IMG/VR virus record: IMGVR_UViG_3300034117_002447
Coordinates: 186,001 to 250,000 of that record
Length of the DNA stretch: 64,000 nucleotides
Strand: one strand, 5' to 3'
The position numbers and the translations under genes were made by a program. Positions 2,393 through 31,824 of this stretch are shown in pieces (position 1 is the first letter of the stretch; each line of letters starts with the position of its first letter). The notes beneath the pieces are model-generated. The model had not been told where the DNA came from. It worked only from the letters and a program-made list of their open reading frames with translations, and did not search any database.

Positions 2393-2397
2393 TAAAG

Positions 2398-2493: not shown

Positions 2494-2506
2494 TCATTTA
2501 TAATAA

Positions 2507-3487: not shown

Positions 3488-3524
3488 TACACAACTAAAA
3501 ATAAAAAAATAAAATAAAACAATA

Positions 3525-5172: not shown

Positions 5173-5182
5173 ATAGAATTAT

Positions 5183-7915
5183 CTATACGAGAATTTTCTT
5201 AAGTTCAGCGATTACTTGTTCGCTAGTTATCAATTTAGAACACTCAAATTGGCGACTAGTTCCTTTATGATCAGGGCACCAATTCCAGTCTCCGGCATCA
5301 AGTCTCAAACGATTGGCACAGCCTGAGCATGCACCAGCCGGGGCAGCTAATTTAACAATTCCATTATCAGGTTCGTTGTAGGGTTCAGTAAATCCAGATA
5401 CTTGAATGGTTGGGACGTTTGCTGCCCACGCTAACCAAGTTAAGCCGCTGCTTATTCCAATGAATGCTTGACACTCAGATATGTTTTTAACAGCCTCCTC
5501 GATTGAACCTTCCGGTAACTTAGCGGCTCCGATTGGATGGCTATTTCCCATATATCCATCGTGTTCTCTTGACATAATGACTGGTTCATATCCATTTTGT
5601 AATAACCAGTCAGTAACCTCCTGCCAGCCATTTGGATTGTTCCAATATTTGGCTTGAGCAGTTCCGTGAATTCCTAAACCTACTTTTTTAGTGACAGTAG
5701 ATCGGTCGTATGTTTTAATTAAAGGCTTGATTTCAGTGTAGTCTAATCCTAAAATATCAGCAGCAGTTCTCTGTAATGGACCCAACTTAAAATCTCTAGG
5801 ATTCATTGCTGAATCGAACACTTCGTTATTATTGTACCATCCGATTTTATACATTGCATAAAGGCCTGTTATACTGGAACCGGGTGCAACTAATTCGATT
5901 TCCGGATATTGCTCAGCAAATAAGTTATTCCAAAAAGTAGAGCAAACAACTTTACAATTATGTTTCTTTCTGAATTCTTCAACGTAAGGGAACCATGCTA
6001 AATTATCACCTAGCGCCTTAGAGTCAAGTGAAATATAAACCTTCTTTCCAGCAATATTATAATTAATTTCTTCAATGACTTCGCTGTTCTGATCAAGTAT
6101 TTGAATTTTCCAATCTTTAAAGTATTTAGAGTAGGTTTTTGCCCAAGTTTTATTACCTAGAGTAGTTAAAAATTCTTCTGAACCAGTTACATTATTTATG
6201 AATTTAACTGGGTACTTAAAACTTGATGATGTTTCGATTTCAACATAGGCTCCATCCATAAAATTATAATAAACAGTTGGACTCTCTGCGTCTGAGAAAA
6301 GGGTTAATCGATTCATTACGATAAATTCAGATAGGTCGTTTTGTAAAAACTCAGAATAAACGCTCTTTCCTAAATAATTAACGGTTGCCGTTAATCCCTT
6401 TTGGTATTTACCTAGATCAACTAATGAGTAACCGTCTTTCTGTAAGGTTACGAATTTTACAAATTTACCGTATCTAACTTCCAGTAAATAGTCGCTATCT
6501 GCTTTTTCTTCGTGAAATCCTGAAATTAGGTGTAGGTATAAATTTCCATTATCACTCGCAGCTGGATAGATTTGGAATTTACCATCATCTCTTAAGATAC
6601 CGTCTCTATTCCAAACAGCTTGAGTATTTAATTCGTTTGAGTTCGCAATATACTCGGTGTGACCTATGTTAGTTGTAAATTTTCTTAAGTATTCAAGAAA
6701 TACTCTCTCTAACTGCCAGCCCTTTGGCTTATTTGTAAAGTATTCGCGTTTTGTTTTTATTTGATCCATCATCTTAACGGCGATATCCGTCTTTATCGAA
6801 AAGATGAAAGTTGCCATGAAAGGCGACAATTGAGTGTCTACACTTGAACCTTCGTGATATTCATAGATAATAGCATCATGCAATTTTGATTTTTCCAAGA
6901 AGGCTTGTCTGTATTGGAATGTATCGATTAGGTTATCGTATTCCATGAAGTGAATCATTTTCTTTCCTAGGAATTTACAGAAATTAAAAGCAATCGTCAT
7001 TGATGTCCATATTGCATAATCATGATGGTACGGCATTGCATTGTCAACTTGATAATCTGCAAATCTGGTCCATCTACCGCTTGATACTGAATGATCTTCA
7101 AATTCTGAATTTAAAAGTAGTGGATTTTCTTTATCAAAGATATAGTAATCAACCAATTTTTGAATTTCAGGCTTTATTGCATAGTGAGATACTAATAGGA
7201 TTGGGATACCTGCAAATTCTCTAAGTTTTGAAATACACTCAATTAGGTCCTGCTCTTTTTCTGGAGTATTAGGCCACGTGTCTAAAACAAAAATGTCATC
7301 CTTATATTCTTCGGAAATAATAATGGATTCTGGAGTAGGCTTATTATAGAGTTGGTCATTCTTAATTCCGCCCTTTACTCCAAAGAAATAGAGATCTCCA
7401 GGATGAGCTGTATATTCAAAGACTCCGTCTGGAAATGCTTGCTCAAAACCTTTAACTTCACGAATGGCCGCTTCAGTTAAATTCTTATAATAGTCAGACC
7501 ATTCTTCTGAAATATTCGCAAGCAGTGGAGCGGCTGAACTGCCGTCTGATCTGCGAGTTCCGTGTTCAGGTCTACCAGTTGAAGCACATGTAAAAATGAA
7601 TGCTCCTCCAGGTTTTAGCATTCGGATAATATTCTGTAGCGATTTCTCATAGAACATGTCGTGTTCAAATACTTCAGTTGAAATAATAAGATCAAACTGT
7701 TCGTTTGGTGCATCGTATAGATGAGCGACTTGAATAACGTCTACGTTTGGACCTTCACCTACATCTAATCCAATATAGTTACAATCGGTTAAGAAGAATC
7801 GGTTATTTCCATTAATATCAAGAGATCCGATATCTAGGACCTTTTTTCCAGTGAAATACTGCGGAAATACTTCACTCATTTTTTTACAAAATTCTTGCTG
7901 TTGAGGATGTGCCAT
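5183..7915 (-). CDS. Fusion: class I SAM methyltransferase + unassigned central domain + Aah/TibC-family (autotransporter heptosyltransferase-like) protein O-glycosyltransferase
   Basis: N-terminal VLDIGS...STEVFEHD...LKPGG. C-terminal LGDNLAWFPYVEEFRKKHNC...YPEI, FIGISSGLTWLAWA and the four-Cys cluster CSGC...WCPDHKGTSRQFECSKLI typical of TibC/Aah. Confidence 0.8.
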   Translation of the reverse strand: MAHPQQQEFCKKMSEVFPQYFTGKKVLDIGSLDINGNNRFFLTDCNYIGLDVGEGPNVDVIQVAHLYDAPNEQFDLIISTEVFEHDMFYEKSLQNIIRMLKPGGAFIFTCASTGRPEHGTRRSDGSSAAPLLANISEEWSDYYKNLTEAAIREVKGFEQAFPDGVFEYTAHPGDLYFFGVKGGIKNDQLYNKPTPESIIISEEYKDDIFVLDTWPNTPEKEQDLIECISKLREFAGIPILLVSHYAIKPEIQKLVDYYIFDKENPLLLNSEFEDHSVSSGRWTRFADYQVDNAMPYHHDYAIWTSMTIAFNFCKFLGKKMIHFMEYDNLIDTFQYRQAFLEKSKLHDAIIYEYHEGSSVDTQLSPFMATFIFSIKTDIAVKMMDQIKTKREYFTNKPKGWQLERVFLEYLRKFTTNIGHTEYIANSNELNTQAVWNRDGILRDDGKFQIYPAASDNGNLYLHLISGFHEEKADSDYLLEVRYGKFVKFVTLQKDGYSLVDLGKYQKGLTATVNYLGKSVYSEFLQNDLSEFIVMNRLTLFSDAESPTVYYNFMDGAYVEIETSSSFKYPVKFINNVTGSEEFLTTLGNKTWAKTYSKYFKDWKIQILDQNSEVIEEINYNIAGKKVYISLDSKALGDNLAWFPYVEEFRKKHNCKVVCSTFWNNLFAEQYPEIELVAPGSSITGLYAMYKIGWYNNNEVFDSAMNPRDFKLGPLQRTAADILGLDYTEIKPLIKTYDRSTVTKKVGLGIHGTAQAKYWNNPNGWQEVTDWLLQNGYEPVIMSREHDGYMGNSHPIGAAKLPEGSIEEAVKNISECQAFIGISSGLTWLAWAANVPTIQVSGFTEPYNEPDNGIVKLAAPAGACSGCANRLRLDAGDWNWCPDHKGTSRQFECSKLITSEQVIAELKKILV

Positions 7916-7922
7916 TTGTTAA

Positions 7923-8588
7923 TTATCTTTTTGTTATAATAGTTATACCGTTTAGGAAATTTACAGATTCAATATCTGTTCTGATTTCCAAACCTTTTTC
8001 TTTTGTTTGTTTAGTTAGGAAGTCTTCTCTTCGTGCATGAACGTTCCAAAATTCTTCCTGCATTTGACCGTTAAAGTTAACATCGTCTACTAGCTTTTTG
8101 CAGAATTCAATTGACGAACCTGGATGCATAAAGCCGCCTTCCCAATCTTCCCAATACGAAGTTGAAGTATCTTCAATAACGTAGACTCCTTCAGGTTTTA
8201 CGTAGTCAATTAGATTATTAAATGAGATAATTACATGTCGATTGATATGTGAACCGTCATCAAGTACCATATCAAATGGTCCCCATTTTTTAGCGACCCA
8301 ATTTAAGAACTGAGGATCGTCTTGTGAACCTATTTCAACAAAAACATTTTTACTAGAGTCTTCGTATTGTTTACATGAAGGTTCAATATCAATTCCTATA
8401 ATTGTTGCATTTGGATAGTATTCTCTCCAAGTCGAAAGAGATTCTCCGTGAAGAACTCCGATTTCAAGAATGGTTAAAGGTTCTAATCGATTGAACGGTA
8501 ACCATTTTTCGTACTTTTCACAGTAATTGTGAATTTCTGAAGATTTGTCTGTGCCTTTAGACTTGGCAATAGTATTTAGTGATCTCAT
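7923..8588 (-). CDS. SAM-dependent O-methyltransferase, MycE-like sugar methyltransferase family
   Basis: GTDKS..H.Y, ILEIGV..G.SL..W, GSQDD and FDMVLDDGSH motifs. Confidence 0.7.
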   Translation of the reverse strand: MRSLNTIAKSKGTDKSSEIHNYCEKYEKWLPFNRLEPLTILEIGVLHGESLSTWREYYPNATIIGIDIEPSCKQYEDSSKNVFVEIGSQDDPQFLNWVAKKWGPFDMVLDDGSHINRHVIISFNNLIDYVKPEGVYVIEDTSTSYWEDWEGGFMHPGSSIEFCKKLVDDVNFNGQMQEEFWNVHARREDFLTKQTKEKGLEIRTDIESVNFLNGITIITKR

Positions 8589-8601
8589 ATAAGAGTATGG
8601 G

Positions 8602-11388
8602 TTATTTCCAAAAGTAGATTAATTGTAGTGCATTATTGTAGCCGCACATTAGCATGTAAGAATTAAAACCTAGTTTATTTAGTCGACTAACGAAATTGTT
8701 TCTAAGGTCTTCATTAAACCCTAAGTGTTCGTGATGGTACTCTACTGCGATATTTCTGATCTTTGATAAATTCTCATCGCTTATTCCATTTAGCGCAATA
8801 ATTTCAGAGCCTTCAATATCTACCTTTAAAAAGTCAATTCGGTCGATTAATTTATTCTCCAGAATGAAATCTAAGGTATATAAGTTTACGTCGTATTGGG
8901 TCTGTAATGGATCTTTATGATGCCATAAGTTAGATCCCCCTAGGTGAGAACTTTCAGTAAGAGTTAAGGTTCCCAAGTTATCAGCAATTGCTGCATTAAA
9001 TAGGACCGCATTTTCTGGAGCATTCTGTTTTAAGATTTCAAAGTATCGACGATCAGGCTCGAAAGTTACAATTTTACTTGCGCCCATGTGATATGCATAT
9101 CGGGTAAAGATTCCAAGATTACCGCCCAAATCCACAACAACATCGCCGGGTCTAACCTTAACTTCTCCATGTTCGTAATCTTTTAGATTATAGATCTCAT
9201 GATAGATTGCGTAATCCCAACCGTATTGATGAGCAATATCCATTGTTCCTCCTGGTACATCTTTAATTGAGCCAAGATTTTTGATTTCATTTTTACCAAC
9301 AAAGAAGTATTCAGTATCGTGGAAGTTTTTATCACGCTGAGTCTCGATATAGTCTGTCATAACCGTTGCGAATCCAAGATCTTTATTTCCATGAAAGTAG
9401 AGAATATTTGATTTATCTTTAGGTACGAATTGCCAGCCGAATATTTTTCCAAAGTTCTTTGGGCCAGAGTCTCTCCAAAACGAGATAAAGTGTTCCATTG
9501 CTTTGCCAGTTGTTCCCAATAAGTCGCCGTCCCATTCTGAGACATCAAAGTTTGAAATTGGCAAAAATGTCGTAAAATTGTGTTTACTTCTCAAGTAATT
9601 ATCGAGACCTTCATCGTTCCATTGTAGTAATTCGTCGTATTGGTCAAGCGGTGTTTCTTTGTACATTTTAAGAATCTCATCAAAGAACCAGGTACACTCT
9701 TTATTGTAGACGTACATGCAAATATGAGCCTTTGTAAATAACCTCTTGACACCATCTCGGTCGCAGATACTTTGGTTAAATAATTGTCTTCCACGAAGTC
9801 CGTCTTTTCTGGTAAAGAAGCCAATAAAATCGTCCTGTATGTGAACGTCTGGAATTGGATAATTTGTAATCTGGCTAAAGTACTTAACGATATTGTCAAT
9901 ATTATAATTTGCAACAATATCTCCGTCTAACCAAACTAAATTCTCGAAACTTTCTTGAATAGCTGCTTCTTTACACGCATACTGTTTCCAATACCATTTA
10001 TCGTGTTCTGAATGATATGGAATACTTAATGTTCGGCTAATAACGTTTGGATGATTAAACGGAACTTCACAGTCTATTCCATATACGAGAATTTTACGAT
10101 TTGAGAATTTAGCTAACGATATAACTAATTTCTCAATGATTGGCATGTATGCTAGATTACCACAGGTCACCCATGCAAAGTCAGTTGAGTATTCAATTGA
10201 CTGCGGGCTAATAAGTTCCTGAATGTGATCTTGTGCGATCGTGGCAGCATTCTGCCAAGTAAATTCATTTCTAATTTGTTCTGATTCCATTAATGCTGAT
10301 TTTTTATAATTTTCAAACTGGTCGTAAACTAGTCTAAGTTTTATTTGAAGATCTGAGAAATTAGGCTCACAGAAATTACCTGGAGTATTCTGATTCCAAG
10401 ACTCCTCATTTGCTACACCTGCTGGAACTTCGCCAATAATTGAAACTGGAATACCCTTACCTTGAGCAAACTGCAGTTGTGCTCCCCAATTTGAGTACAT
10501 TGATGGAACTCCGCATGACATTGCCTCAATTAATGGAAGATTCCAGCCTTCACTTCTGGCACATGACACAAAAACGTCAGCCGACTTAAGTAGTTTTACG
10601 TAATCTTCTTTTGACTGATGGTGTAGTACTTTAATTCCTGAATGAGAAAGCTCAAACTTAGCTAATCTCTCCTCAGTAGAAGAGAGGCCGTCCGTTGCAA
10701 ATCGATTATCTACGCTAATGACAAGCTCAACATTCTCATCTTGTGAAAAGGTTTCAGTAAAAGCTCTGATAATTTCTTTGGTTGACTTACGATATTCCCA
10801 GCGACCCACTACGACAAATCGGAAAGGCCTGTTCTCTGGAAAAGCCGAATCCGGTGAGGTCGGTTTAAACATCTCAGTGTCTACTCCCTCTGGTACAACT
10901 TTTACTTTATGTGATGCGATTCCTTGCTCAATTGTGCACTGTTTTTGCCATTCACTAGGAACCCAAACTTGATCGAACTTTTTAAGTTGAGCAAAGAAGT
11001 CTTCAGGTTGTCTAGTTGTTTCCCATACATTGTATGCAATTGATGGACCTGAGTAATCTTGGCTAAAGTACAGGTGACCTGTGTCATTTAGCACAATATT
11101 AACAGTTGGCTCAGTAGATTGAATTGGGTACTTCAAGTATAGAGGAAACTCCGCATGACCTGTTTGAGTACCTAACGTTTGTTCAGATAACATCGTCTTT
11201 AACTCAGAGTCTATATAATACTCCCCATTGTGAGGCTCATCGTCATTGTAACCTTTCCATGAATCGCCGATCGTCCAATTTCTAACTGAAACTGGCGTTA
11301 ATTGATTTAGAGCTTTAAAGAAATTTCGTGAATGGCAATTATATCCGGTATCGCCTATTATTGAAGTGTGAGCTTTGATTAGAGTCAT
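8602..11388 (-). CDS. Tri-domain enzyme: GT4 (GT-B) glycosyltransferase + GT-A-like DxD domain + FkbM-family methyltransferase
   Basis: GRWEYRK and DVFVSCARSEGWNLPLIEAMSCGVP (GT4); VWLDGDIV (DxD); VVDLGGNLG...FEPD...LKVDIEGSE (FkbM). Start moved to the ATG at 11388 (MTLIKAH). Confidence 0.8.
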   Translation of the reverse strand: MTLIKAHTSIIGDTGYNCHSRNFFKALNQLTPVSVRNWTIGDSWKGYNDDEPHNGEYYIDSELKTMLSEQTLGTQTGHAEFPLYLKYPIQSTEPTVNIVLNDTGHLYFSQDYSGPSIAYNVWETTRQPEDFFAQLKKFDQVWVPSEWQKQCTIEQGIASHKVKVVPEGVDTEMFKPTSPDSAFPENRPFRFVVVGRWEYRKSTKEIIRAFTETFSQDENVELVISVDNRFATDGLSSTEERLAKFELSHSGIKVLHHQSKEDYVKLLKSADVFVSCARSEGWNLPLIEAMSCGVPSMYSNWGAQLQFAQGKGIPVSIIGEVPAGVANEESWNQNTPGNFCEPNFSDLQIKLRLVYDQFENYKKSALMESEQIRNEFTWQNAATIAQDHIQELISPQSIEYSTDFAWVTCGNLAYMPIIEKLVISLAKFSNRKILVYGIDCEVPFNHPNVISRTLSIPYHSEHDKWYWKQYACKEAAIQESFENLVWLDGDIVANYNIDNIVKYFSQITNYPIPDVHIQDDFIGFFTRKDGLRGRQLFNQSICDRDGVKRLFTKAHICMYVYNKECTWFFDEILKMYKETPLDQYDELLQWNDEGLDNYLRSKHNFTTFLPISNFDVSEWDGDLLGTTGKAMEHFISFWRDSGPKNFGKIFGWQFVPKDKSNILYFHGNKDLGFATVMTDYIETQRDKNFHDTEYFFVGKNEIKNLGSIKDVPGGTMDIAHQYGWDYAIYHEIYNLKDYEHGEVKVRPGDVVVDLGGNLGIFTRYAYHMGASKIVTFEPDRRYFEILKQNAPENAVLFNAAIADNLGTLTLTESSHLGGSNLWHHKDPLQTQYDVNLYTLDFILENKLIDRIDFLKVDIEGSEIIALNGISDENLSKIRNIAVEYHHEHLGFNEDLRNNFVSRLNKLGFNSYMLMCGYNNALQLIYFWK

Positions 11389-11486
11389 TGACTTGATAAT
11401 TGTTTCTATTTTATACTCGATTTTTATATTTTGTTTAGGTAAACCGTAAAAAATATTTAAGTATAAAAGTAAAAACACAAAGATAC

Positions 11487-12077
11487 GTGGAACGAAGATT
11501 AATGTTTCCTCAAAAAGAGGTAGAATTATTGAACTGGTACTGGTTTAGCGAGGGCTTCTCAGCGGAAGAAATTGATAGAGTTCGCAAAGTATCAGAACTT
11601 TTTGAATATCATCAAGCTGTTACTTTTGGAAATCAAGGAGAAAACCATAAAATTAGAAAGAGCAAAATTAAATGGTTAGGCGAGAATAACGAATCGACTA
11701 AATGGATTTATGATAAGTTGATGGAATTTGCAATAATTGCAAATCGAGAACTTTGGAATTTTGACCTAATATCAATAATTGACTCAATCCAGTACACTGA
11801 ATATTATGAAGGTGGTGGTCACTATGATTACCATGTAGATCTTGGACCAGGTTCAGCATCTCACCGGAAAATTAGTATTGTTGTACAATTAAGCGACCCT
11901 TCTGAATACGAAGGCGGCGATTTTGAAATACTTAAAGGAATAACTCCTGATAAATTGCCCCGAAATAAGGGAGCAACTATTTTATTCCCAAGTTACCTAT
12001 TACATAGAGTAACTCCAGTAACCAAAGGAATTAGGCGAAGCCTAGTTATTTGGATAGGAGGAAATTCATTAAGATAA
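11487..12077 (+). CDS. 2OG-Fe(II) oxygenase, prolyl-4-hydroxylase/PKHD-like
   Basis: HxD (YDYHVD), RKISIVVQLSDPSEYEGG, distal His in HRVTPVTKG and the 2OG-binding RRSLV; GTG start. Confidence 0.85.
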   Translation: MERRLMFPQKEVELLNWYWFSEGFSAEEIDRVRKVSELFEYHQAVTFGNQGENHKIRKSKIKWLGENNESTKWIYDKLMEFAIIANRELWNFDLISIIDSIQYTEYYEGGGHYDYHVDLGPGSASHRKISIVVQLSDPSEYEGGDFEILKGITPDKLPRNKGATILFPSYLLHRVTPVTKGIRRSLVIWIGGNSLR

Positions 12078-12083
12078 AGTTAC

Positions 12084-12109
12084 GGGAGAGTCAAAGACTC
12101 TCCCTTTTT
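12084..12109 (+). terminator. Rho-independent terminator between convergent genes
   Basis: Perfect 9-bp stem GGGAGAGTC-AAA-GACTCTCCC followed by TTTTT. Confidence 0.8.
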
Positions 12110-12110
12110 G

Positions 12111-12359
12111 TTACGCGGCAGTTAAGCCTAATGAAGTAAGAACTTTTCCAATTAGCACAGAGTCGTCTGTTCCCCAATCTGAAATACTTGTTAAGAGCCT
12201 GTCTCCGCTACAAATTGCAACCTCACTTGAATCAAGTATCTGAAACATAACTTTTACCGAAGTTGAATTCAATTTATAGTGTACAGAGAAGATGCTTAAT
12301 GTTACTCCAGTTTTTCCAAGAATAGTTATTGGGTTTATCGATATTGTAGTATTTTCCAT
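12111..12359 (-). CDS. Small hypothetical protein, last gene of the fibre operon
   Basis: 82-aa ORF ending WGTDDSVLIGKVLTSLGLT, a pattern recalled from small fibre-associated phage proteins. Confidence 0.55.
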   Translation of the reverse strand: MENTTISINPITILGKTGVTLSIFSVHYKLNSTSVKVMFQILDSSEVAICSGDRLLTSISDWGTDDSVLIGKVLTSLGLTAA

Positions 12360-12386
12360 TTTACTTTATTTTATTTTTAATACGTA

Positions 12387-14999: not shown

Positions 15000-15013
15000 T
15001 TATATTCTATTTT

Positions 15014-24000: not shown

Positions 24001-26206
24001 CTGAAGTACCTGAAGAACCGTTAGAACCAGAAGTACCTGAGCTACCGTCTGAACCTGACGTACCTGCTGAACCTGAAGTTCCTGATACACCATCTATTCC
24101 AGAAGTACCTGAAGAACCATCTGAACCTGAAGTTCCAGAAGAACCGTTTGAACCTGATGTACCGGATGTTCCAGAAGAACCGTTTGATCCTGAAGTTCCA
24201 GAAGAACCATCTGAACCTGACGTACCAGATGAACCATTTGTTCCTGAGACTCCATCTATTCCTGATGTACCTGAGCTACCGTCTGATCCTGAAGTACCTG
24301 AGGTACCATTTGAACCTGAAGTACCTGAGGTACCATTTGAACCGTTTGAACCTGAAGTTCCGTTTGAACCCGAAGTTCCAGAAGAACCATCTGAACCGGA
24401 CGTACCGGCAGAACCTGAAGTTCCTGATACTCCGTCTATTCCAGAAGTACCTGAGCTACCGTCTGATCCTGAAGTACCTGAGCTACCGTTTGATCCTGAA
24501 GTTCCAGAGCTACCATTTGAACCTGAAGTACCTGAGGTACCATTTGAACCTGAAGTACCGCTTGAGCCATCTGACCCTGAAGTTCCAGCCGAACCTGATG
24601 TTCCTGAGACTCCGTCTATTCCTGATGTTCCGGAAGATCCATTTGAACCAGAAGTTCCAGAAGAACCGTTTGAACCGGAAGTTCCAGAAGAACCATTTGA
24701 ACCGGAAGTACCTGAGCTACCGTCTGAACCTGACGTACCTGCTGAACCTGAAGTTCCGGAAACTCCGTCTATTCCTGATGTTCCCGAAGAACCGTCTGAC
24801 CCTGAAGTTCCAGAGCTACCATTTGAGCCTGATGTACCGCTTGAGCCGTTAGAACCTGAAGTTCCAGAAGAACCGTTTGAGCCTGATGTTCCAGAGCTAC
24901 CGTCTGAACCGCTTGTTCCAGAAGAACCGCTTGTTCCTGAGACTCCATCTATTCCTGAAGTACCTGAACTACCGTCTGAACCAGAAGTACCTGAAGTACC
25001 GGCTGACCCTGAAGTACCTGATGTTCCCGAAGAACCTGAAGTACCTGAGCTACCGTCTGAACCTGAAGTTCCAGCTGAACCTGAAGTTCCGGAAACTCCA
25101 TCTATTCCTGAAGTACCTGAGCTACCGTCTGAACCAGAAGTACCTGAAGAACCTGATGTACCAGTTGAACCAGAAGTACCTGATGTACCTGATGTACCTG
25201 AGCTACCGTCTGAACCTGAAGTTCCAGAAGAACCGTTTGTTCCAGAGACTCCATCTATTCCTGAAGTACCTGAGCTACCGTCTGAACCAGAAGTACCTGA
25301 AGAACCTGATGTACCAGTTGAACCAGAAGTACCTGATGTACCTGAGCTGCCGTCTGAACCTGAAGTTCCAGAAGAACCGTTTGTTCCAGAGACTCCATCT
25401 ATTCCTGAAGTACCAGAGCTGCCATCTGCACCAGAAGTCCCAGCTGAACCAGACGTTCCACTTGAACCGTTTGAGCCGGATGTACCAGAAGTACCGGTTG
25501 AACCGGACGTACCTGAAGTACCTGACGTACCAGATGAACCGGCAGTACCGGAAGTTCCACTTGTTCCTGAAGTACCGGATGAACTAGTAAGTCCATCTTC
25601 TAATGTTGTACCAATATAGTAAAAACCTTTAATATATGGATCAACTGATCCATAAGTAGAAGTTAAATAAGTAACCATTGAATCTGATAATAGTAGAATA
25701 CCATTATCGTAATTAAAAACCCAACTTACTTCAGTGCCTGCATTATCAGTAGTTAAGATTTGGGTTCCGCCTGATGCAGGATTACCATTCCAAAATTCAG
25801 CGGTCCATCCAATTGAAGGAGCACCGCTTGCTTGCAATATCTTTTGAGGTTGAATCCAGTCTAGGATTTGTGTGTTAAAATCGTTAAGCGTCGAACAGGC
25901 TACCCATGTAGTATTATTACCTGAAATAACTTGACTTAATTCTACGGCATTTCCTGTAGAATATGCGTCTGCTACAATCGTTTCCAACGGTTGACCTGAT
26001 GCTAATAGAGCAACAGCCGCTGATTTATTTGCAACTGGGTTTTGTTTAACAACATCGAACTGAGTTAAAACTCGAGCAGCTGATATATTAGGGTTAAACG
26101 CAAACTTTGCTTCGTACCAATTAAAATTAGAGGCAGAATCAATTACGTTTGCGGCTTGGACCTTAAATACGAGTTTTAATCTTTCATTATCTGTATAGCC
26201 TGCCAT
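15014..26206 (-). CDS. Giant 3730-aa Gly/Ser/Thr repeat fibre protein (proline-free Gly-X-Y) with four non-repetitive domains
   Basis: Uninterrupted ORF. Unique domains at about 25585-26206, 21895-22410, 15790-16170 and 15014-15600, separated by (GSS/GTS/GSN)n blocks. Confidence 0.85.
16170..21895 (-). repeat. Repeat block 2 (~1900 codons of Gly-X-Y; GSN/GTR-type)
   Basis: Degenerate 9-nt unit array with 10 GIDGVSG landmarks, all encoded GGT-ATA. Confidence 0.9.
22410..25585 (-). repeat. Repeat block 1 (~1050 codons of Gly-X-Y; GSD-type, Arg-free)
   Basis: Degenerate 9-nt unit array with 13 GIDGVSG landmarks, all encoded GGA-ATA. Confidence 0.9.
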
Positions 26207-26213
26207 TTACTAA

Positions 26214-26414
26214 TTATATTATTTCGTTTTCTATTGATTCTTCCTGGTTTGCCTCATATAATTGACCTTCGTATTCTGCAACCATAATATTAAATTCATT
26301 TATTGTTGTTTTAAATACGTTAACCATATCATCAGAAACTCGTATACTAAGAGAAACACTCTGCTTATCTTTATCTATTTTAACCTTAAGCTTTTTATCG
26401 AAACTTTTTTCCAT
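26214..26414 (-). CDS. Small hypothetical protein
   Basis: 66-aa ORF tightly packed between two same-strand genes. Confidence 0.55.
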   Translation of the reverse strand: MEKSFDKKLKVKIDKDKQSVSLSIRVSDDMVNVFKTTINEFNIMVAEYEGQLYEANQEESIENEII

Positions 26415-26429
26415 ATTATTAATTTTTTT

Positions 26430-28313
26430 TTAGTTGAATGTTACAGTCACTGTATCGATTCTAATAGCTGAATTGTGGATTTTAAATTCTACGTATATTC
26501 CGTTTGTTGCATTAAATCCTCCAAATGTTCCATTTATTGTATTTCCACTGGATGAACCTAATCGGATTTGACCATCAGTTGCACCATCATCAAATGTTCC
26601 AAAATTATAACCTGAACCGTTTAGGATTAATGGATACGAAGTAGGTCCAAAAACTCCAACGGTTGCTCCTATTTTACGAACAGTTACAGTAAGAGCACCG
26701 CTAATTAAATCAGCTAGAGCAGATCCGCCTGCGAAAGTTCCAGCGAATACCATTGAAAAACTAGGAATTGGAACGCTTGACGAACTTAGTGTAGTATAAA
26801 ATTTTCTATAGTACGATGCAGCTGCAGTAAGTGAAGAATAGTTTGGGTTTGAACCATTTAAGTCTGATTTAAAAGCAGCTAGATCGGGTTGAATTGTTGC
26901 AGTATTTGGTGCAGTTAAGAAATATTGATCAGGTCTAACGATTGTACCACCGACAACGCAAGCATTTCCGTTTGATAGACTTGCGGTAGAAACCCATGCA
27001 GTCGTGTAATCGCTTTGTAATCTAAAAGCCTCATCGTCAAATCGCTCTACGTATTGAGTGCTATTTCCACTAGTTGGATATGTGTCCACTAATATTGAAT
27101 GAGTTGAAGAAGATTTAGTTCCGCCTGAAGACCATGGATCAAATAGTGAAGCAGTCGCGGCTGCAGTTGCTCCTCGATACCTAAAATTTGAAGAATTAAT
27201 CGCCCAATTTAAAATATCATATTCAGCAGCTGTATTGTTGAAGAAATTGGTCCATCCAGTAAAAGTACCAGAAGTTGGTGACCATGCATATTCAGCAATA
27301 GTTGGAACTCCGTACGATGGTGCAACAAATTGAAAATTAGTATTTGCGCCAAGAGCACGGCCTTGAGTATTTGCGTTTAGGTTATTAATTGCATCAACGT
27401 GTGCACTAAACTGTGAAGTTAGAGTGTAGTACTCAACACCGCTTAGATGCTTGGTTACAATATTTCCTAGAGTTTCTTCGATTGTACAAGTTGAACCGGC
27501 TCCAAAGCTTGGAGTAGATGCATTTGTATCAAAGAAAACTGCAGATTGTGTATAAGTGAAAGTTTGAGCACCATCACTAGTTGAATCAGTTAGGTTTGTA
27601 ATAACTATATTGTATTTACCGCCGTCTATTAAACCTACGCCAGATAGTACTTGATCAATATCAACGGTTACGGTAATGTCAGCTTTTTGTTTTAAACTAT
27701 CAGTTGCAAAACCGGCAATAATAATGTCAATACCGTCTGTACTTGAATATGTCCCGTCTGCAGTAACTCCCTGAGAAAATGTTGAAATAATAGTGGTGCC
27801 ATCTGCATCATATACATCAACGGTTACCGTAGCGTCTCCGCCTTGACCAGTTACCGCATTTGCTGTACTGAATGAGACTGTGCTACTAGTTGTCGTTGAC
27901 TGATTTGTACCTGCCCAAGTTCCAGCCTTAAATGGAGTTCCTTCAGTCGTTGGATTGCTTATTCTAACCGTTGATCTAGCTAAAGTTTCTGATACTAATC
28001 CAGACGAGGTTCCGTCGTTTGTGCCAAAGTGACTTGCGAATGTTGGAGTAGGAACGTAAACATTTATTGTACTTGAATCTCCAGGTTTCTGAGCTCCAAG
28101 TATATCAATTCCAACAAAATTAACTTTTGAATAATTTCCGACAAGAACGCCTTCATCATAAAAATCAATTCCGCTAATTCCACTTGAGCCGGTATTTGGA
28201 GAATCATTCCAATATAAATTACCCGAATTATCTATTGCTAAAAATTTAGTCTTGGTGTTATCCTGGGATACTCCGCTAAGATCAACTTGTTTTATTTTAA
28301 GTTTGTGGGACAT
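26430..28313 (-). CDS. Ser/Thr/Gly-rich putative virion structural protein
   Basis: 627 aa, rich in beta-type T/S/G residues, first gene behind a late-promoter motif; carries a vestigial TGSSGISG. Confidence 0.6.
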   Translation of the reverse strand: MSHKLKIKQVDLSGVSQDNTKTKFLAIDNSGNLYWNDSPNTGSSGISGIDFYDEGVLVGNYSKVNFVGIDILGAQKPGDSSTINVYVPTPTFASHFGTNDGTSSGLVSETLARSTVRISNPTTEGTPFKAGTWAGTNQSTTTSSTVSFSTANAVTGQGGDATVTVDVYDADGTTIISTFSQGVTADGTYSSTDGIDIIIAGFATDSLKQKADITVTVDIDQVLSGVGLIDGGKYNIVITNLTDSTSDGAQTFTYTQSAVFFDTNASTPSFGAGSTCTIEETLGNIVTKHLSGVEYYTLTSQFSAHVDAINNLNANTQGRALGANTNFQFVAPSYGVPTIAEYAWSPTSGTFTGWTNFFNNTAAEYDILNWAINSSNFRYRGATAAATASLFDPWSSGGTKSSSTHSILVDTYPTSGNSTQYVERFDDEAFRLQSDYTTAWVSTASLSNGNACVVGGTIVRPDQYFLTAPNTATIQPDLAAFKSDLNGSNPNYSSLTAAASYYRKFYTTLSSSSVPIPSFSMVFAGTFAGGSALADLISGALTVTVRKIGATVGVFGPTSYPLILNGSGYNFGTFDDGATDGQIRLGSSSGNTINGTFGGFNATNGIYVEFKIHNSAIRIDTVTVTFN

Positions 28314-28343
28314 TCGGTTTTAATTTACATTTTTCTACTACAG

Positions 28344-28352
28344 TTATTTATC
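28344..28352 (-). promoter_or_regulatory. Putative late promoter GATAAATAA heading the fibre operon
   Basis: Intergenic, 30 nt upstream of the 28313 start. Confidence 0.55.
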
Positions 28353-28374
28353 ATCACTAGTAGATCCAAGTAAT

Positions 28375-29331
28375 CTATTTCCGTTTCTCCTTGGCATATA
28401 AAATAGCAGCAACGTATTTCCCAGATGCGCTTTCCGGATCAACGTACGATAGATCAGTATCAAATGGACTACTTGATCGAAAATCTGCTTTATAAAATAA
28501 CGTATCTTTGGTTGAATCAGTTACTCCAGCATTGTGCATAATTGGGCACTTATTGTATGCATGGATATCAGAAGTTCCCCAACTAAAATCAAGTTCAGGA
28601 GTAACAATCGTCTGGGCTCCCATTTTCCATGCTCCCCAAAGAACTGACCACATATCAGCACACCACTTTTGAATTGGATTAAATTGAGCCGCTTCTTCTG
28701 TAGATAAATTAGAGCGGTCTTGATGCTCTCTATCACACATGTACTTGTAAATAGTCAATGTGTCCTCGGCTACTTCTTTCCAGAAATCGGCAGTTACACC
28801 TTTCATTAAGTATTGAGCACCGCCTGAGCCAGCCTCATTTGCTTCCACTAATTCCGGTGGAATTCCTGAAAGACTGCATAGATCTGTGAAAATATCTTCT
28901 GATTTGCTCTTAATGTACTTCGCACCAATGTATGAAATTGTGTCGCTTACGTACCAATAAAGATCTCCATGTAGGGCATCAAAGTTAGGAAGTTCTCTAA
29001 AAATAATATCAGAATCATGGTAAAAGACAGTTTCTCCACGAAGTTCCGGATGAGCTCTAAAGTGCTGTTCTAGAATATCAGGTCTTAGGATCGGAATGTA
29101 TCCATAATTTTCAGTTATTCTCTTTTTATAGAAAAAGAATCTTACCATTGGATATTTGGAAGCAAGAGCTCTACCTTCAGGCGAAGGTTCATTATCATAG
29201 GCAAATAGAATATCTATCCAGTTAGGGTTTATTCCGCTCTTCATAAAATTATGAATTACTACCTCAACTTGCCAATGAAAATACGGGTGGTCCGGCTGAG
29301 CGGACATAAATATAGTCTTCTTAGTTAGCAT
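28375..29331 (-). CDS. GT-A glycosyltransferase resembling plant Hyp O-arabinosyltransferase (GT95) / peptidyl-Ser galactosyltransferase (GT96)
   Basis: PYFHWQVEV, YGYIPILRP, FYHDSDIIF (DxD), GGAQYLMK and WCADMWSVLWGAWKMG echo HPAT/SERGT motifs YxxWQ, GYxxLNRP, EPDHxF, GNSPxII and WVLEMYAY. Confidence 0.55.
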   Translation of the reverse strand: MLTKKTIFMSAQPDHPYFHWQVEVVIHNFMKSGINPNWIDILFAYDNEPSPEGRALASKYPMVRFFFYKKRITENYGYIPILRPDILEQHFRAHPELRGETVFYHDSDIIFRELPNFDALHGDLYWYVSDTISYIGAKYIKSKSEDIFTDLCSLSGIPPELVEANEAGSGGAQYLMKGVTADFWKEVAEDTLTIYKYMCDREHQDRSNLSTEEAAQFNPIQKWCADMWSVLWGAWKMGAQTIVTPELDFSWGTSDIHAYNKCPIMHNAGVTDSTKDTLFYKADFRSSSPFDTDLSYVDPESASGKYVAAILYAKEKRK

Positions 29332-29361
29332 ACTAATTTATACTACTAATTGGCTTAAGGT

Positions 29362-31788
29362 TTATCCTCTAATGGTAGTAGTTGTAGTTAGATATTCAGT
29401 TACGTTAACTTCATACAGACACTCATCTAATATGATTTTCCACTTACCAATTGGGTCGATTGTAAATATACCTTCGATTATAGTATCAGATCCGTCGATT
29501 GTTACAGTATACATACCTTCTGAAATAGGCGCGTTTATATTATCAAATATTTGAATTACTGAATACTCAGTTGTTGATAAAACAAACGATATAGTCTTAG
29601 CCTCACGGTCTTGATAATACTCAATTGATACAGATGGGCATCCAATTGTAGTAGTAGTGGTAGTTGATGGAGCAAGCGTAGTGGTTGTGGTCGTTGCCGC
29701 TAGCGTTGTAGTCGTAGTAGTAATTCCGCTATACAGTCCGCAATCTATCACAGTTAAAGTTTGAGCACCTGCATCAAATTCATAACAGAATGTACATGTC
29801 GAGTTAATTGTTACTTTGAGAGGTCCATCGATTAGCGCTAAATTTTCAGCCGGAATTCTAGTTGTACCTGTGTAAATAATATCGGCAAATTGCTGGATCG
29901 TATAAAGTAATCCTCCAGGCCCAGTAACTTGAAAAGTATATTGACTTTCGCCAGTCTGGGATGGAGTAACTGTGAATTCGCTACATGGATCAATCGTCGT
30001 CGTTGTAGTAGTCGGAGCAATCGTCGTTGTAGTAGTCGGAGCGATTGTTGTAGTGGTAGTCGGCTCAATTGTCGTAGTAGTAGTCGGCTCAATTGTCGTA
30101 GTAGTAGTCGGAGCGATTGTTGTAGTGGTAGTCGGTGCAATCGTCGTAGTAGTCGGCGCAATTGTCGTCGTAGTGGTTGGAGCAGCGGTGGTAGTTGTTG
30201 TGGTAACTGCACCAAACTCAACGTTAACTACGTATTGGCAGCCTGCCGCATTGGTAAACGTGTACGTACCATATACGGTATTAATATTTGAAGATAAGTA
30301 CTCAGAATCAGTTCTGTTAAATATCCATGAAAGACTTATGTTAACTCCATGCAATTCAGTCAGATTGTAGGTAGGTCCACCTGCTGACGCAAAGACTACT
30401 GAATACGGACCAGTTGGAGTTCCTATAAATGATATGACTGTTGCATTTAAGTTTTCAGCAACTGAGTAATTAATTGAGCCTGGAGCACAAGTCGTTGTTG
30501 TACTTGTTGGTGCGATCGTAGTAGTCAAGGTAGGCGAAACCGTTGTAGTTGTTGTAGTTGGAGTAGCCTGAAAAGGAATAGCGTAAAAAGGACTAAATGA
30601 GGTTACTTGCGCCCATATTTTTCTAGTTGCATAGTCAGGAGCATACGGTCCAGTTAAGACAGTTTCATCAACATAGACTCCATTTACATTATGGAATATT
30701 CGAACTGTGTCAAATACCGGCTCAGTCATTGCTTGAGGTAGAGTAAATTCAAGAAGAGCTCCAATAGTTAATGGAGTTGAAATATCAAATGCCATTGCTG
30801 CATTATTTAAGTAATAACCTGCCGGTAAAATACCAGATGGAGATAGAGTCGGCGCTGGTACAGAACATACTGTGATTGGCGCAGATTCTGTAGCGTTTGT
30901 ATCTAACACAACCGATACTCCAACCTGTGGGTGATTCGTTGAACTTTGACCAGCTTGCACAATTTCGGTCGTACATAAAACGCCAGCTGCTCCGCAATAA
31001 GGATCAGCTGATGTGTAAATTAGAGTTACAAAATCGCCACCGTCTAGTCCATATCCAGCAACAGAAGTGTTCCAATAAAGTTCATCAGTTGAATCAACTG
31101 CCCCGTAATTACTTGCAGTAGTCCCATTGTCTTTACTAAAGTACGCTGGCGCTACTTTGGTGCCATCTCCTATGATTATTTGTTGGCCGTTAATGAACAA
31201 TAAGTACTCACTAGTCGTGATCGGCGCGGGCATCGGAAGTAATCCTGGTGAAACTAAAGCAGAGTCTCCAGTAATTACATTTGGCGTTACCGATCTGGTT
31301 ACAGCCGCTCTACAAGAACCTGCACCGCCTCCGCTGAGTAGCGTCCAGCCAGTTGATACTAAATATCCATAAAATCCTTCAATTCGGCCGCCCTGTTGAG
31401 TAATGTAGATTACTTCTCCTGGAACTCCAGTTGGCGGAATTGCTCCGTATACTTTAAGTCGAAGCCTTTTACCTTCAACTACATCTTCCATTACCGCATT
31501 TTTACCGGTGATTGCGCCAGTTGGGTAGAGTTTTATTACTTCAGGATACGACCCATTTTGTTGCTGTGCACCGTATACAGTTAGACCTTGCCTAACGATG
31601 ATTGTGTTTGCTGAAATTCCTTCAATGTCAACTGAAACTCCACCAGTTTGATCGAAGTTAACGGCTGATAGAAACTCAGTTATTGCTGACTTTATTGTGC
31701 TAAAATTAAAATTAGCCAAATCAACAACGCTAGTTAAGCTAGCACCGTTAATTGATTTTACACTTGAAATTTTTAATTGAATTGACAT
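29362..31788 (-). CDS. Mucin-like virion protein with poly-Thr/Pro stalks separating globular domains
   Basis: (I[AE]PTTTTT)n and further T5-T6 tracts; globular segment ending WAQVTSFSPF; N-terminal ANFNF motif. Confidence 0.7.
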   Translation of the reverse strand: MSIQLKISSVKSINGASLTSVVDLANFNFSTIKSAITEFLSAVNFDQTGGVSVDIEGISANTIIVRQGLTVYGAQQQNGSYPEVIKLYPTGAITGKNAVMEDVVEGKRLRLKVYGAIPPTGVPGEVIYITQQGGRIEGFYGYLVSTGWTLLSGGGAGSCRAAVTRSVTPNVITGDSALVSPGLLPMPAPITTSEYLLFINGQQIIIGDGTKVAPAYFSKDNGTTASNYGAVDSTDELYWNTSVAGYGLDGGDFVTLIYTSADPYCGAAGVLCTTEIVQAGQSSTNHPQVGVSVVLDTNATESAPITVCSVPAPTLSPSGILPAGYYLNNAAMAFDISTPLTIGALLEFTLPQAMTEPVFDTVRIFHNVNGVYVDETVLTGPYAPDYATRKIWAQVTSFSPFYAIPFQATPTTTTTTVSPTLTTTIAPTSTTTTCAPGSINYSVAENLNATVISFIGTPTGPYSVVFASAGGPTYNLTELHGVNISLSWIFNRTDSEYLSSNINTVYGTYTFTNAAGCQYVVNVEFGAVTTTTTTAAPTTTTTIAPTTTTIAPTTTTTIAPTTTTTIEPTTTTTIEPTTTTTIAPTTTTTIAPTTTTTTIDPCSEFTVTPSQTGESQYTFQVTGPGGLLYTIQQFADIIYTGTTRIPAENLALIDGPLKVTINSTCTFCYEFDAGAQTLTVIDCGLYSGITTTTTTLAATTTTTTLAPSTTTTTTIGCPSVSIEYYQDREAKTISFVLSTTEYSVIQIFDNINAPISEGMYTVTIDGSDTIIEGIFTIDPIGKWKIILDECLYEVNVTEYLTTTTTIRG
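29994..30207 (-). repeat. Thr-rich tandem repeat (about 8 x I[AE]PTTTT(T))
   Basis: Direct ~24-nt repeats visible in the DNA, and the translation. Confidence 0.85.
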
Positions 31789-31815: not shown

Positions 31816-31824
31816 TTATTTATT
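31816..31824 (-). promoter_or_regulatory. Putative late promoter AATAAATAA
   Basis: Intergenic, 27 nt upstream of the 31788 start. Confidence 0.55.

Follow-up and report, generated by a model that had tools for sequence, protein, structure and literature searches.

What purpose could five genes for sugar-transferring, methylating, and oxidizing enzymes serve among four Ser/Thr-rich repeat proteins, inside a block of phage virion genes? The question is raised by the IMG/VR virus record IMGVR_UViG_3300034117_002447, of which we analyzed positions 186,001 to 250,000 (64,000 nucleotides, hereafter the window, whose numbering is used throughout), and specifically by its locus at 5183–31788. Taking the whole explanation jointly, we consider it probable that this region is a virion-fiber glycosylation module within the neck and tail-completion gene block of a T4-like phage. 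A preliminary description of this DNA had already read the locus as a system for glycosylated, methylated fibers. The enzyme families and their co-occurrence with repeat proteins support that reading, with the glycans, their methylation, and their place on the virion as its predicted elements.

The locus and its phage

The nine open reading frames (ORFs) of the locus lie at exactly the positions given in the preliminary description:

5183–7915, minus strand: 910-amino-acid (aa) protein with a methyltransferase domain, a middle domain, and a TibC/Aah-type domain
7923–8588, minus strand: 221-aa protein, Methyltransf_24
8602–11478, minus strand: 958-aa protein with a GT4 domain, a middle domain, and an FkbM domain
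11487–12077, plus strand: 196-aa 2-oxoglutarate (2OG)-Fe(II) oxygenase
12387–14999, minus strand: 870-aa collagen-like protein
15014–26206, minus strand: 3730-aa Gly-X-Y giant fiber protein
26430–28313, minus strand: 627-aa Ser/Thr-rich structural-type protein (phrog_31482, expectation value (E) 1e-32)
28375–29331, minus strand: 318-aa enzyme of the GT-A glycosyltransferase fold, phrog_4417
29362–31788, minus strand: 808-aa poly-Thr linker protein

Virion genes had been named on both flanks, and profile matches agreed with this, weakly on the gp14-like side:

4555–5172, minus strand: tail-tube-fold protein (gp3-like), the downstream module boundary (phrog_45 tail tube, E 3e-8)
3812–4558: T4 gp15 family gene (family match)
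33201–35273, minus strand: 690-aa neck-type (gp14-like) protein, the upstream module boundary (phrog_679 head closure, weak, E 1.2e-4)

Over these genes the window was 100% identical to IMG/VR contigs of 270–271 kb, and the host genome of the module is that of a ~271-kb freshwater phage. Since the window encodes the gp15-family gene, the tail-tube-fold gene, the weak neck-protein match, a gp55-like late sigma factor, and GroEL, we classified it as a T4-like jumbo phage. A megablast comparison of the region, taken in two halves, with 50,697 phage records returned zero matches; at the DNA level there is no close cultured relative.

Gene order was kept in relatives down to ~57% identity, running gp14-like, amidoligase-like, poly-Thr, GT-A, 627-aa-like, Gly-X-Y giant, the 958-, 221-, and 910-aa enzymes, tail-tube-fold, and gp15. 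The placement of the gp14-like gene was syntenic, as was that of the tail-tube-fold protein, which was 85–90% identical. Repeat lengths differed freely among relatives, and the 870-aa collagen and the 2OG gene occurred in some of them only. One contig of 254 kb labeled as an uncultured Bacteroidetes metagenome-assembled genome (CAIWBA010000291.1, L234; L numbers denote compared loci and lineages) had the 958-aa, 221-aa-like, 910-aa, tail-tube, and gp15 genes in synteny at 66–85% identity. It is almost certainly a phage relative binned with a Bacteroidota genome, which is either a misbinning or a weak hint at the host.

Repeat proteins as candidate substrates

The four Ser/Thr-loaded proteins (the 3730-aa protein, the 870-aa Collagen protein, the 808-aa poly-Thr protein, and the 627-aa Ser/Thr-rich protein) have the compositions earlier ascribed to them. 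The 3730-aa protein is 34% Ser, 29% Gly, and 15% Thr. Read directly, without a Pfam run, it has Gly at every third residue in runs spanning residues 211–1269, 1443–3359, and 3471–3536, giving ~1014 triplets with Thr or Ser at X, with Ser, Asn, or Asp at Y, and with Pro essentially absent. An N-terminal anchor (residues 1–200), two globular inserts between the runs, and a globular C-terminus complete the architecture. The N-terminus belongs to phrog_33494 (E 2.5e-29), and its first 200 aa were 78–83% identical in relatives with other repeat lengths.

Because this N-terminus is conserved, because the DNA repeats of the gene are degenerate (64–90% matches) with periods that are multiples of 9, and because the length differences between independent assemblies (−324 and +9 bp) preserve the reading frame, the giant ORF is genuine and neither a chance nor an assembly product. 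Long ORFs on the opposite strand across the gene (e.g., 16476–21926, plus strand) were rejected as repeat shadows. Four contigs that are otherwise 100% identical place the GT-A gene 20463, 20139, 20472, and 20463 bp from the 910-aa gene, so that the giant repeat gene either varies in length in frame or was assembled differently.

The 870-aa protein matched Pfam Collagen (E 2e-86, 284 bits) and contains 213 triplets, with Pro at X 77 times and at Y 11 times and mainly Thr, Ser, or Gln at Y. Its triplets are GPT/GPQ/GIQ together with GTS/GSS (the bacterial GPT/GPQ type), and residues 426–556 form a globular insert. We saw it in this strain's lineage only, and relatives at 66–74% identity were missing it. 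Both the 870-aa and the 3730-aa sequences show the long-run Gly-X-Y periodicity of collagen repeat proteins.

The 808-aa protein has mucin-like poly-Thr linkers of the TTTTTIAP type; it is syntenic in relatives, with a conserved N-terminal 525 aa and a variable Ser/Thr-rich C-terminus. The 627-aa protein is 25% Ser plus Thr, and its N-terminal ~39 aa are common to relatives whose remaining sequence is Gly-X-Y.

A TibC/Aah-type domain and Gly-X-Y proteins

The C-terminal domain of the 910-aa protein carries much of the argument:

5186–6283, minus strand: TibC/Aah-type domain (residues 545–910), matched by 4rap and TIGR04414

It aligned to the TibC structure (PDB 4rap) with E 5.8e-54 over TibC residues 21–385 (~36% identity over 365 residues), and scored 270.7 bits against the NCBIfam equivalog TIGR04414 (cutoff 200), covering model positions 10–374 of 374. 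These matches bear out the Aah/TibC-type glycosyltransferase (GT) proposed in the preliminary description. All characterized members of this family are protein O-glycosyltransferases (PMC4358343).

The TibC structure paper assigned Asp-110 as the catalytic base, Thr-226, Lys-230, Arg-286, and Trp-305 to sugar binding, and four Cys (339, 342, 358, and 370) to an iron finger (PMC4358343). We mapped these roles onto the alignment of the 910-aa protein with TibC and onto 49 non-redundant phage homologs. D637 corresponds to Asp-110 and C863, C866, C880, and C892 to the iron-finger Cys, all invariant in the 49 homologs. Equivalents of Thr-226, Lys-230, and Trp-305 are kept in the 910-aa protein and are invariant or nearly so in the homologs (Thr-226 in 48/49). 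The Arg-286 position is Ala in the 910-aa protein and V/I/A/T/L in all 49 homologs, while Arg is kept in 53/57 rows of the canonical bacterial clade. The donor may therefore not be ADP-heptose, or the binding mode may be altered. At the stereoselectivity position (Pro-300 in TibC, Ser-294 in AAH) the 910-aa protein has Ser and its clade Gly or Ser.

In cellular genomes, the family tree resolved two clades, each with a Shimodaira–Hasegawa-like approximate likelihood-ratio (SH-aLRT) support of 100. Members of the canonical clade of bacterial autotransporter heptosyltransferases (BAHT) were 30–37% identical to the query and had a Gly-X-Y ORF nearby at 0/58 loci. The Arg-286-less, phage-type clade was 41–66% identical to the query and had one at 9/12 loci, often as the adjacent gene (Fisher 3e-9). 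Neighbors in this clade were positive for Pfam Collagen at L237, L240, and L242. On the Methylobacter luteus chromosome (L237) the Pfam Collagen gene ends 40 nucleotides (nt) before the TibC-like gene, and at L242 it directly precedes it. At the canonical locus L249 the TibC-like gene sits beside an AIDA-type adhesin. No autotransporter was found beside the 910-aa gene, where the neighbors are Gly-X-Y or fiber proteins. By analogy, the arrangement mirrors the classical gene pair of autotransporter and BAHT enzyme, with a collagen-like partner apparently replacing the autotransporter. The literature searched contained no paper connecting BAHT enzymes with collagen-like proteins.

We made the viral comparison with 269 IMG/VR stretches encoding 910-aa relatives, clustered at 75% identity, counting an ORF when it held 20 or more Gly-X-Y triplets and lay no farther than 10 kb from the TibC-like gene. 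GroEL-anchored neighborhoods (80 loci, 26 lineages) served as controls. Such an ORF was present in 10/22 TibC-like viral lineages and 0/26 control lineages (Fisher 1e-4), a comparison among lineages that are not phylogenetically independent and with controls from non-structural regions. No control locus had either type of repeat considered here, Gly-X-Y or poly-Thr (0/80).

Cultured Microcystis phage Mel-JY01 encodes, in a row, a Gly-X-Y gene, a ‘structural protein’ gene, and a fusion of GT4, GT-A-like, and TibC domains; the phage went unmentioned in the literature searched. Stand-alone TibC-like genes (382–385 aa) lay ~3 kb downstream of Ser/Thr/Gly-rich giants of 1700–2460 aa, one of which ends in a Peptidase_S74 tail-fiber chaperone domain. 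Another such giant, of 2287 aa and preceding the stand-alone TibC-like gene of L048 (3–6866), had a sub-threshold intein-splicing match (E 3e-5, 24 bits vs 35.8). From these sequence relationships we propose that the TibC-type domain is the initiating GT on Ser/Thr of Gly-X-Y fibers.

The phrog_4417 enzyme and poly-Thr proteins

The 318-aa protein belongs to the unannotated family phrog_4417 (E 3e-65). It was unmatched in Pfam (E up to 10) and NCBIfam, and a profile search against PDB did not reach solved GTs. TALE-repeat matches in PDB were rejected as spurious, as no matched stretch passes alone. Its AlphaFold2 (AF2) model, with a predicted local distance difference test (pLDDT) score of 94.4, has a GT-A fold of the GT8/GT24/GT77-like kind. 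Foldseek paired the model with WbbM, UGGT, XXYLT1, Skp1 AgtA, and glycogenin at probability 1.0 (template-modeling (TM) scores 0.43–0.50) and also with giant-virus GT8-like proteins. D106-S-D108 and H266-N-A-G are invariant, so that the protein combines the Rossmann-like fold, DxD motif, and downstream His of GT-A enzymes; no CAZy family was assignable. A large-database search with the 318-aa profile returned 4093 matches, all unnamed and without Pfam domains, which marks the family as large and unannotated.

Its genomic partner is a protein with a poly-Thr tract, scored when it lay within 8 kb of a 318-aa homolog. Such a protein was found in 13/15 GT-A lineages and 0/26 controls (Fisher 6e-9), nearly always one or two genes upstream. 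Only 4/78 TibC loci had a poly-Thr tract, and these were exactly the four that also encode a 318-aa homolog.

The family occurs in 77 cultured phage records, nine of which we sampled. The gene or genes immediately upstream were Thr-rich in eight of the nine, with poly-Thr tails or tracts in six and TxT/PTT repeats in two:

Enterococcus phiFL1A: poly-Thr in the major tail protein
Clostridium phiCTP1: poly-Thr in the protein in major-tail position
Lactobacillus iLp84: poly-Thr in the major capsid protein and the following ORF
Staphylococcus RQ1: poly-Thr in the major tail protein
Lactococcus 1706: poly-Thr in the major structural protein
Chryseobacterium MA9V-3: internal poly-Thr tract in a hypothetical protein
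Lactobacillus LP65 and 521B: Thr-rich TxT/PTT repeats

By annotation, the upstream protein was a major tail, capsid, or structural protein in four phages and an Ig-domain, mass spectrometry-verified structural, or hypothetical protein in the others. No paper in the literature searched tied a GT to the poly-Thr tails of Firmicutes phage proteins. We propose, from sequence and gene context, that the 318-aa GT-A is an O-glycosyltransferase for poly-Thr tracts. In Staphylococcus phage RQ1 (L229, 2223–2666) a poly-Thr run closes the major tail protein, whose gene overlaps an ORF that is nearly all poly-Thr (2614–2925), which may be a programmed frameshift giving a poly-Thr-extended tail-tube subunit.

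What the pairings indicate

A test of whether repeat genes co-occur with these GT families had been suggested in the preliminary description, and both pairings (Gly-X-Y with TibC, poly-Thr with GT-A) emerged from it well above the controls. The contrary pattern, enzymes of lipopolysaccharide (LPS)- or DNA-modifying families occurring independently of the repeat genes, was looked for as well; the TibC-type domain instead belongs to a protein GT family and the pairings recur. From this co-occurrence across phages and bacteria we infer a phage that glycosylates its own fibers. Two other explanations bear on the same data.

Under the first, the GT and methyltransferase genes are an auxiliary island that remodels the host envelope (LPS, capsule, or S-layer glycan), for instance for superinfection exclusion, and the repeat proteins are unmodified neighbors. 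GT4, GT9-like, FkbM, and TylF-like methyltransferases are indeed typical of O-antigen and polysaccharide clusters, PHROGs classes the GT4 as ‘moron/auxiliary metabolic gene’, published cyanophage annotations read such genes in this way (PMC12801897), and half of the TibC-like lineages have no Gly-X-Y gene within 10 kb. We nonetheless consider this explanation unlikely. The characterized TibC/Aah relatives are all protein O-glycosyltransferases (PMC4358343) and the domain scores above the equivalog cutoff; the cluster lacks Wzx/Wzy, an undecaprenyl-phosphate priming GT, and membrane-anchored enzymes; the genes lie on the structural-gene strand in the neck and tail-completion block, syntenic across relatives at 57–85% identity; and the pairings are specific to substrate type across phyla, including bacterial two-gene cassettes and siphophage tail modules.

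The second treats co-localization as a by-product of a hypervariable host-range island, with enzymes that may act on another phage or host protein. Repeat length and content do vary strongly among relatives, the 870-aa collagen and 2OG genes come and go, and tail-fiber and collagen-like regions are known as metaviromic islands (PMC10202952). Yet the pairing recurs in jumbo myophages, 40-kb siphophages, and bacterial chromosomes, often between directly adjacent genes; the association tracks enzyme clade and not genome type; and control neighborhoods were devoid of either repeat. We judge such an island a poor and rather improbable account of the pairings, and fiber glycosylation by the phage's own enzymes the better one.

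The accompanying enzyme domains

Five further domains of the 910- and 958-aa proteins were delimited:

10204–11388, minus strand: GT4 (GT-B) domain of the 958-aa protein (PF00534, phrog_2170)
9139–10203, minus strand: middle domain of the 958-aa protein (residues 426–780), with an invariant D-x-D
8605–9138, minus strand: FkbM-family methyltransferase domain at the C-terminus of the 958-aa protein (PF05050 E 1.4e-14; TIGR01444 87 bits vs cutoff 37.7)
6281–7348, minus strand: middle domain of the 910-aa protein (residues 190–545), GT-A-like fold plus beta-sandwich
7361–7915, minus strand: N-terminal class-I S-adenosylmethionine (SAM) methyltransferase domain of the 910-aa protein (Pfam Methyltransf_23/11; phrog_32762, E 2e-48)

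Glycosyltransferases. The GT4 domain of the 958-aa protein scored 55.1 bits against PF00534 (gathering score 26.4) over residues 215–330 and E 8e-39 against phrog_2170, and accompanied the TibC-like domain in all lineages examined. The protein probably starts at Met-31, because relatives begin at residues 31–34. Its middle domain was unmatched in Pfam (E up to 10) and has two invariant Asp (D93 and D95). Homologs of this domain stand alone or are fused to GT4, SAM methyltransferase, FkbM, or pyruvyl-transferase domains, and its sequence points to a probable GT-A domain of the GT8/GT77-like kind. In the 910-aa protein, too, the middle domain was unmatched in Pfam (E up to 10), and profile searches against PDB gave nothing useful. 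Its AF2 model (pLDDT 83.6) comprises a nucleotide-diphospho-sugar-transferase domain plus a beta-sandwich, with Foldseek matches to GlcAT-P (1v84, E 1.6e-5), IspD, UGPase, and the GT domain of LH3, and a Y-D-x-x-x-D motif is invariant. The model suggests that it is probably a glycan-extending GT-A-like GT. In hhalign the three domains without Pfam matches (910-aa middle, 958-aa middle, and 318-aa) showed no similarity to one another, and they are therefore three different domains.

Fusions elsewhere join GT4, a GT-A-like domain of the 910-aa middle type, and TibC (Mel-JY01, L037, and L047), a domain like the 958-aa middle domain and TibC (L045), or GT4 and TibC (L034), and a Methyltransf_24/TylF-type domain is fused to GT4 beside the TibC-like gene in L048. 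Such fusions of GT and methyltransferase domains indicate that the activities belong to one pathway.

Methyltransferases and oxygenase. The 221-aa methyltransferase matched PF13578 (Methyltransf_24, 28.6 bits vs cutoff 26.3) and phrog_21658 (E 7e-31) and is TylF-like in relatives. The 196-aa oxygenase matched PF13640 (2OG-FeII_Oxy_3, E 4.7e-14) and has the core that prolyl 4-hydroxylases (P4H) require (H116-x-D118, H173, and R183/184-x-S185). Its best solved relatives were PKHD hydroxylases of the PiuC/YbiX type (E 4e-10); a transmembrane P4H reached E 0.6, and P4H of bacteria, algae, or viruses were missing from the solved relatives listed. Kinship therefore gives no support to a classification as collagen P4H, the PiuC/YbiX type being closer. 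Close 2OG homologs accompanied Gly-X-Y neighbors that contain Pro (the window, L029, L034, L035, and L039) and were missing where repeats were Pro-free, with L036 and L056 as exceptions. The sequences suggest that the 196-aa oxygenase may hydroxylate Pro in the 870-aa collagen, which we offer only as a suggestion. In several lineages (L032, 191–1841; L034, L035, and L039, ~4470–5695) the TibC-type gene is preceded, at a distance of a few kb, by two or three tandem 2OG-Fe(II) oxygenase paralogs.

Set against the earlier inventory, a count of up to four GT domains proves if anything low, with three firm and two probable; the three methyltransferase domains were found as Methyltransf_23, Methyltransf_24, and FkbM; and the 2OG-Fe(II) enzyme is the PF13640 oxygenase. 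The label HPAT/SERGT (GT95/GT96) received no support, as no Pfam or NCBIfam family model matched and no such solved structure appeared in fold searches.

A set of methyltransferase, 2OG oxygenase, and GTs could also hypermodify the phage's own DNA in that order, as in phages that glycosylate 5-hydroxymethylcytosine. The set does look superficially like published clusters (bioRxiv 10.1101/2023.12.21.572611), and there was a weak Pfam ‘GT4-conflict’ match (E 7.7e-7). The methyltransferases are, however, of small-molecule/O-methyltransferase types and not C5- or N6-DNA methylases, the oxygenase is of the PF13640/PiuC type and not TET/JBP, the TibC-type domain is a protein GT, the cluster lies among late structural genes, and Pfam and NCBIfam found no DNA-methylase or TET/JBP-type domain in the module enzymes. 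PADLOC matched only a generic SAM motif on the methyltransferase side. DNA hypermodification is thus a very remote prospect beside fiber glycosylation. A defense-system reading was rejected as well, since PADLOC gave generic SAM-motif or 2OG matches only.

Late-promoter-like motifs

The canonical T4 late promoter TATAAATA occurred 0 times in the window (6.4 ± 2.4 expected). The motif ATAAATA(A) occurred 15 times, and nine gene starts had it within 45 nt upstream, including those of the 808-aa, 627-aa, gp14-like, and gp15-like genes:

730, 3800, and 35325, plus strand: ATAAATA(A) sites
55546, 52225, 35291, 31817, 28345, and 227, minus strand: ATAAATA(A) sites

The motif lies at 31817–31823 before the 808-aa gene, at 28345–28351 before the 627-aa gene, and at 35291 before the gp14-like gene. 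This placement suggests that ATAAATA(A) is a late promoter of the T4 type in variant form, which would be read with the help of the gp55-like sigma factor (55571–55990). The 318-aa gene starts 30 nt after the 808-aa gene and is therefore probably co-transcribed late. The 958-aa and 2OG genes diverge with 8 bp between their starts, so their promoters must sit inside each other's coding sequence. A GC-rich hairpin at ~12084–12109 followed by a T-run forms the terminator of the plus-strand 2OG gene.

Proposed pathway

We propose two enzyme–substrate pairs. In one, the metal-dependent GT8-like 318-aa GT-A would O-glycosylate the poly-Thr linkers of the 808-aa protein encoded directly upstream. In the other, glycosylation of the Gly-X-Y repeats would begin with the TibC/Aah-type domain, which would place a first sugar on their Ser/Thr residues in the 3730- and 870-aa fibers, possibly using a donor that is not ADP-heptose. 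Lengthening of the glycan would fall to the GT4 domain and the two GT-A-like middle domains, the three methyltransferase domains would O-methylate it, as the GT-GT-methyltransferase enzyme A064R does in chloroviruses, and the 2OG oxygenase may hydroxylate Pro of the 870-aa collagen. Modification would take place in the cytoplasm, and the fibers would then attach to the neck or head of the particle via their conserved N-terminal anchors. On the virion the decorated fibers might serve in shielding, adhesion, or host recognition.

Several observations weigh against this pathway. TibC recognizes a folded beta-helix and not a collagen triple helix, so the acceptor chemistry for collagen-like repeats is an extrapolation, and the Arg-286 equivalent is missing from the whole phage-type clade. 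About half of the TibC-like viral lineages had no Gly-X-Y ORF within 10 kb, and the dependence among lineages and the non-structural controls limit the statistics. Nucleotide-sugar synthesis genes, including the ADP-heptose pathway, were not found in the window; a cytidylyltransferase-like gene lies near the module in some other lineages. The 958-aa middle domain matched Skp1 alpha-galactosyltransferase (6mw5) only sub-significantly (E 0.035 and 0.44), at the DxD and N-terminal motifs, and the modeled 910-aa middle domain could be a nucleotidyltransferase instead of a GT. The 958-, 221-, and 910-aa genes have no late-promoter motif of their own.

Other genes around the module

One further gene lies between the module and its upstream boundary:

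31843–33195, minus strand: 450-aa amidoligase-like protein (PF12224 Amidoligase_2, 30.3 bits vs cutoff 22)

It had an additional weak pentapeptide-repeat match and was 59–82% identical in relatives, always between the neck-type gene and the poly-Thr protein gene. Possibly it, too, modifies proteins as part of the module. Small unannotated ORFs of ~66 and ~82 aa occupy the module's two widest intergenic gaps, at 26207–26429 and 12078–12386 (minus strand).

Beside the gp15-like gene are two LamG/ConA-like lectin-fold paralogs, 38% identical, at 761–2392 and 2507–3487 (plus strand), which from their sequence are possible carbohydrate-binding virion proteins. A 2277-aa protein at 38495–45328 (minus strand) has five DUF5122 beta-propeller repeats (E 1.5e-34) and is followed by large proteins of 1199, 726, 352, and 1089 aa, presumably baseplate or fiber components. 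The N-terminus of the 1089-aa protein is common to poly-Thr proteins of 1590–1840 aa that precede the GT-A in other jumbo phages.

Novelty and reach

Three elements appear to be new: the collagen-associated, Arg-286-less TibC/Aah clade of phages and bacteria, the probable function of phrog_4417, and the 3730-aa scale of a Pro-free collagen-like protein. None of the literature searched describes the Arg-less clade, a phrog_4417 function, or a Pro-free collagen-like protein of that scale. The broader claim would be that there are two widespread, unrecognized protein O-glycosylation systems, the Arg-286-less TibC clade acting on Gly-X-Y proteins and phrog_4417 acting as a mucin-type poly-Thr O-GT; for this we hold the chances to be even. 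If it is true, the Arg-286-less clade acts on giant fibers in phages and within two-gene cassettes in bacteria (Methylococcaceae and other groups), while phrog_4417, with >4000 ‘hypothetical’ members, decorates major capsid, tail, and fiber proteins in phages of Enterococcus, Staphylococcus, Lactobacillus, Lactococcus, and Clostridium. Glycosylated virions would then be common far outside the actinobacteriophages.

Demonstrations of virion glycosylation by phage enzymes are so far known from actinobacteriophages only, where the modification affects antibody recognition. Our data suggest that it is far more widespread and involves at least two further enzyme families. phrog_4417, which is found in tail and capsid modules of dairy and therapeutic-candidate phages, gains a testable function. 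The Pro-free Ser/Thr collagen-like giants of aquatic jumbo phages gain a rationale, in that glycans could stabilize, hydrate, or shield a helix without hydroxyproline. In practice, the findings touch on the pharmacokinetics, immunogenicity, adsorption, and host range of phages, and on the design of collagen-like materials that are glycosylated.

Comparison with known systems

BAHT enzymes. The TibC-type domain resembles BAHT (PMC4358343) in scoring above the family cutoff and in sharing the catalytic Asp, three of four sugar-binding residues, and the four-Cys finger. BAHT enzymes, iron-containing dodecamers with an ADP-heptose donor, are encoded beside a Ser-rich repetitive surface protein which they hyperglycosylate (PMC4358343), and the placement of the 910-aa gene is similar. 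It differs in forming a separate, Arg-286-less clade, in having a collagen-like or fiber neighbor and not an autotransporter beta-helix, and in being often fused to GT4, GT-A-like, and methyltransferase domains.

Chloroviruses and mimivirus. Chlorovirus PBCV-1 A064R/A061L (PMC9614988) is a precedent for a viral multidomain enzyme with two GT domains and a methyltransferase domain that builds and methyl-caps the glycan of the virus's own structural protein. In the chlorovirus, however, the glycan is N-linked and sits on the major capsid protein, and the enzyme's domains show no sequence relationship with the phage ones. Mimivirus combines collagen-like proteins, a 2OG hydroxylase, and GTs, and its fibrils carry virus-made, partly methylated glycans (PMC9614988, PMC9546862). 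Its lysyl hydroxylase and glucosyltransferase L230 acts on hydroxylysine, whereas the phage Gly-X-Y repeats are essentially without Lys; the phage oxygenase is not L230- or LH-like, and the carrier is a tailed phage and not a nucleocytovirus.

Bacillus BclA. The 870-aa protein shares with BclA (PMC8968730) the GPT-type triplets with Thr at Y, which in BclA carry O-glycans and make up a hair-like nap. BclA belongs to the spore surface and is served by other glycosyltransferases, and the 3730-aa phage protein, unlike it, is Pro-free.

Actinobacteriophages. Virion glycosylation by phage-encoded GTs and methyltransferases has been documented in actinobacteriophages (Freeman et al. 2023, as cited in PMC12619734 and PMC13313380), and the module is therefore not without precedent. 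The preliminary description knew of no characterized tailed-phage system with this whole complement. Measured against this precedent, the claim stands for the collagen-like giants and the enzyme families, which differ, and yields where virion glycosylation as such is concerned. Here the enzymes are a Pfam-less GT-A family and a TibC/Aah-type GT-B, giant collagen-like fibers are among the putative substrates, the carriers are Gram-negative/freshwater and Firmicutes phages, and the system is known from its genes. As those papers portray it, the actinobacteriophage system is one of phage GTs, often with a methyltransferase, that act on Ser/Thr-rich C-terminal tracts of capsid or tail-tube subunits and are encoded in or near the structural module. 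Its hallmark at the gene level, a phage GT adjoining a virion protein with a Ser/Thr tract, is found here too. The arrangement of phrog_4417 with poly-Thr tails in Enterococcus, Lactococcus, Lactobacillus, Staphylococcus, and Clostridium phages follows the same logic, and the phrog_4417 loci share their architecture with that cited in PMC12619734 for mycobacteriophages, in which capsid and tail-tube tails are glycosylated.

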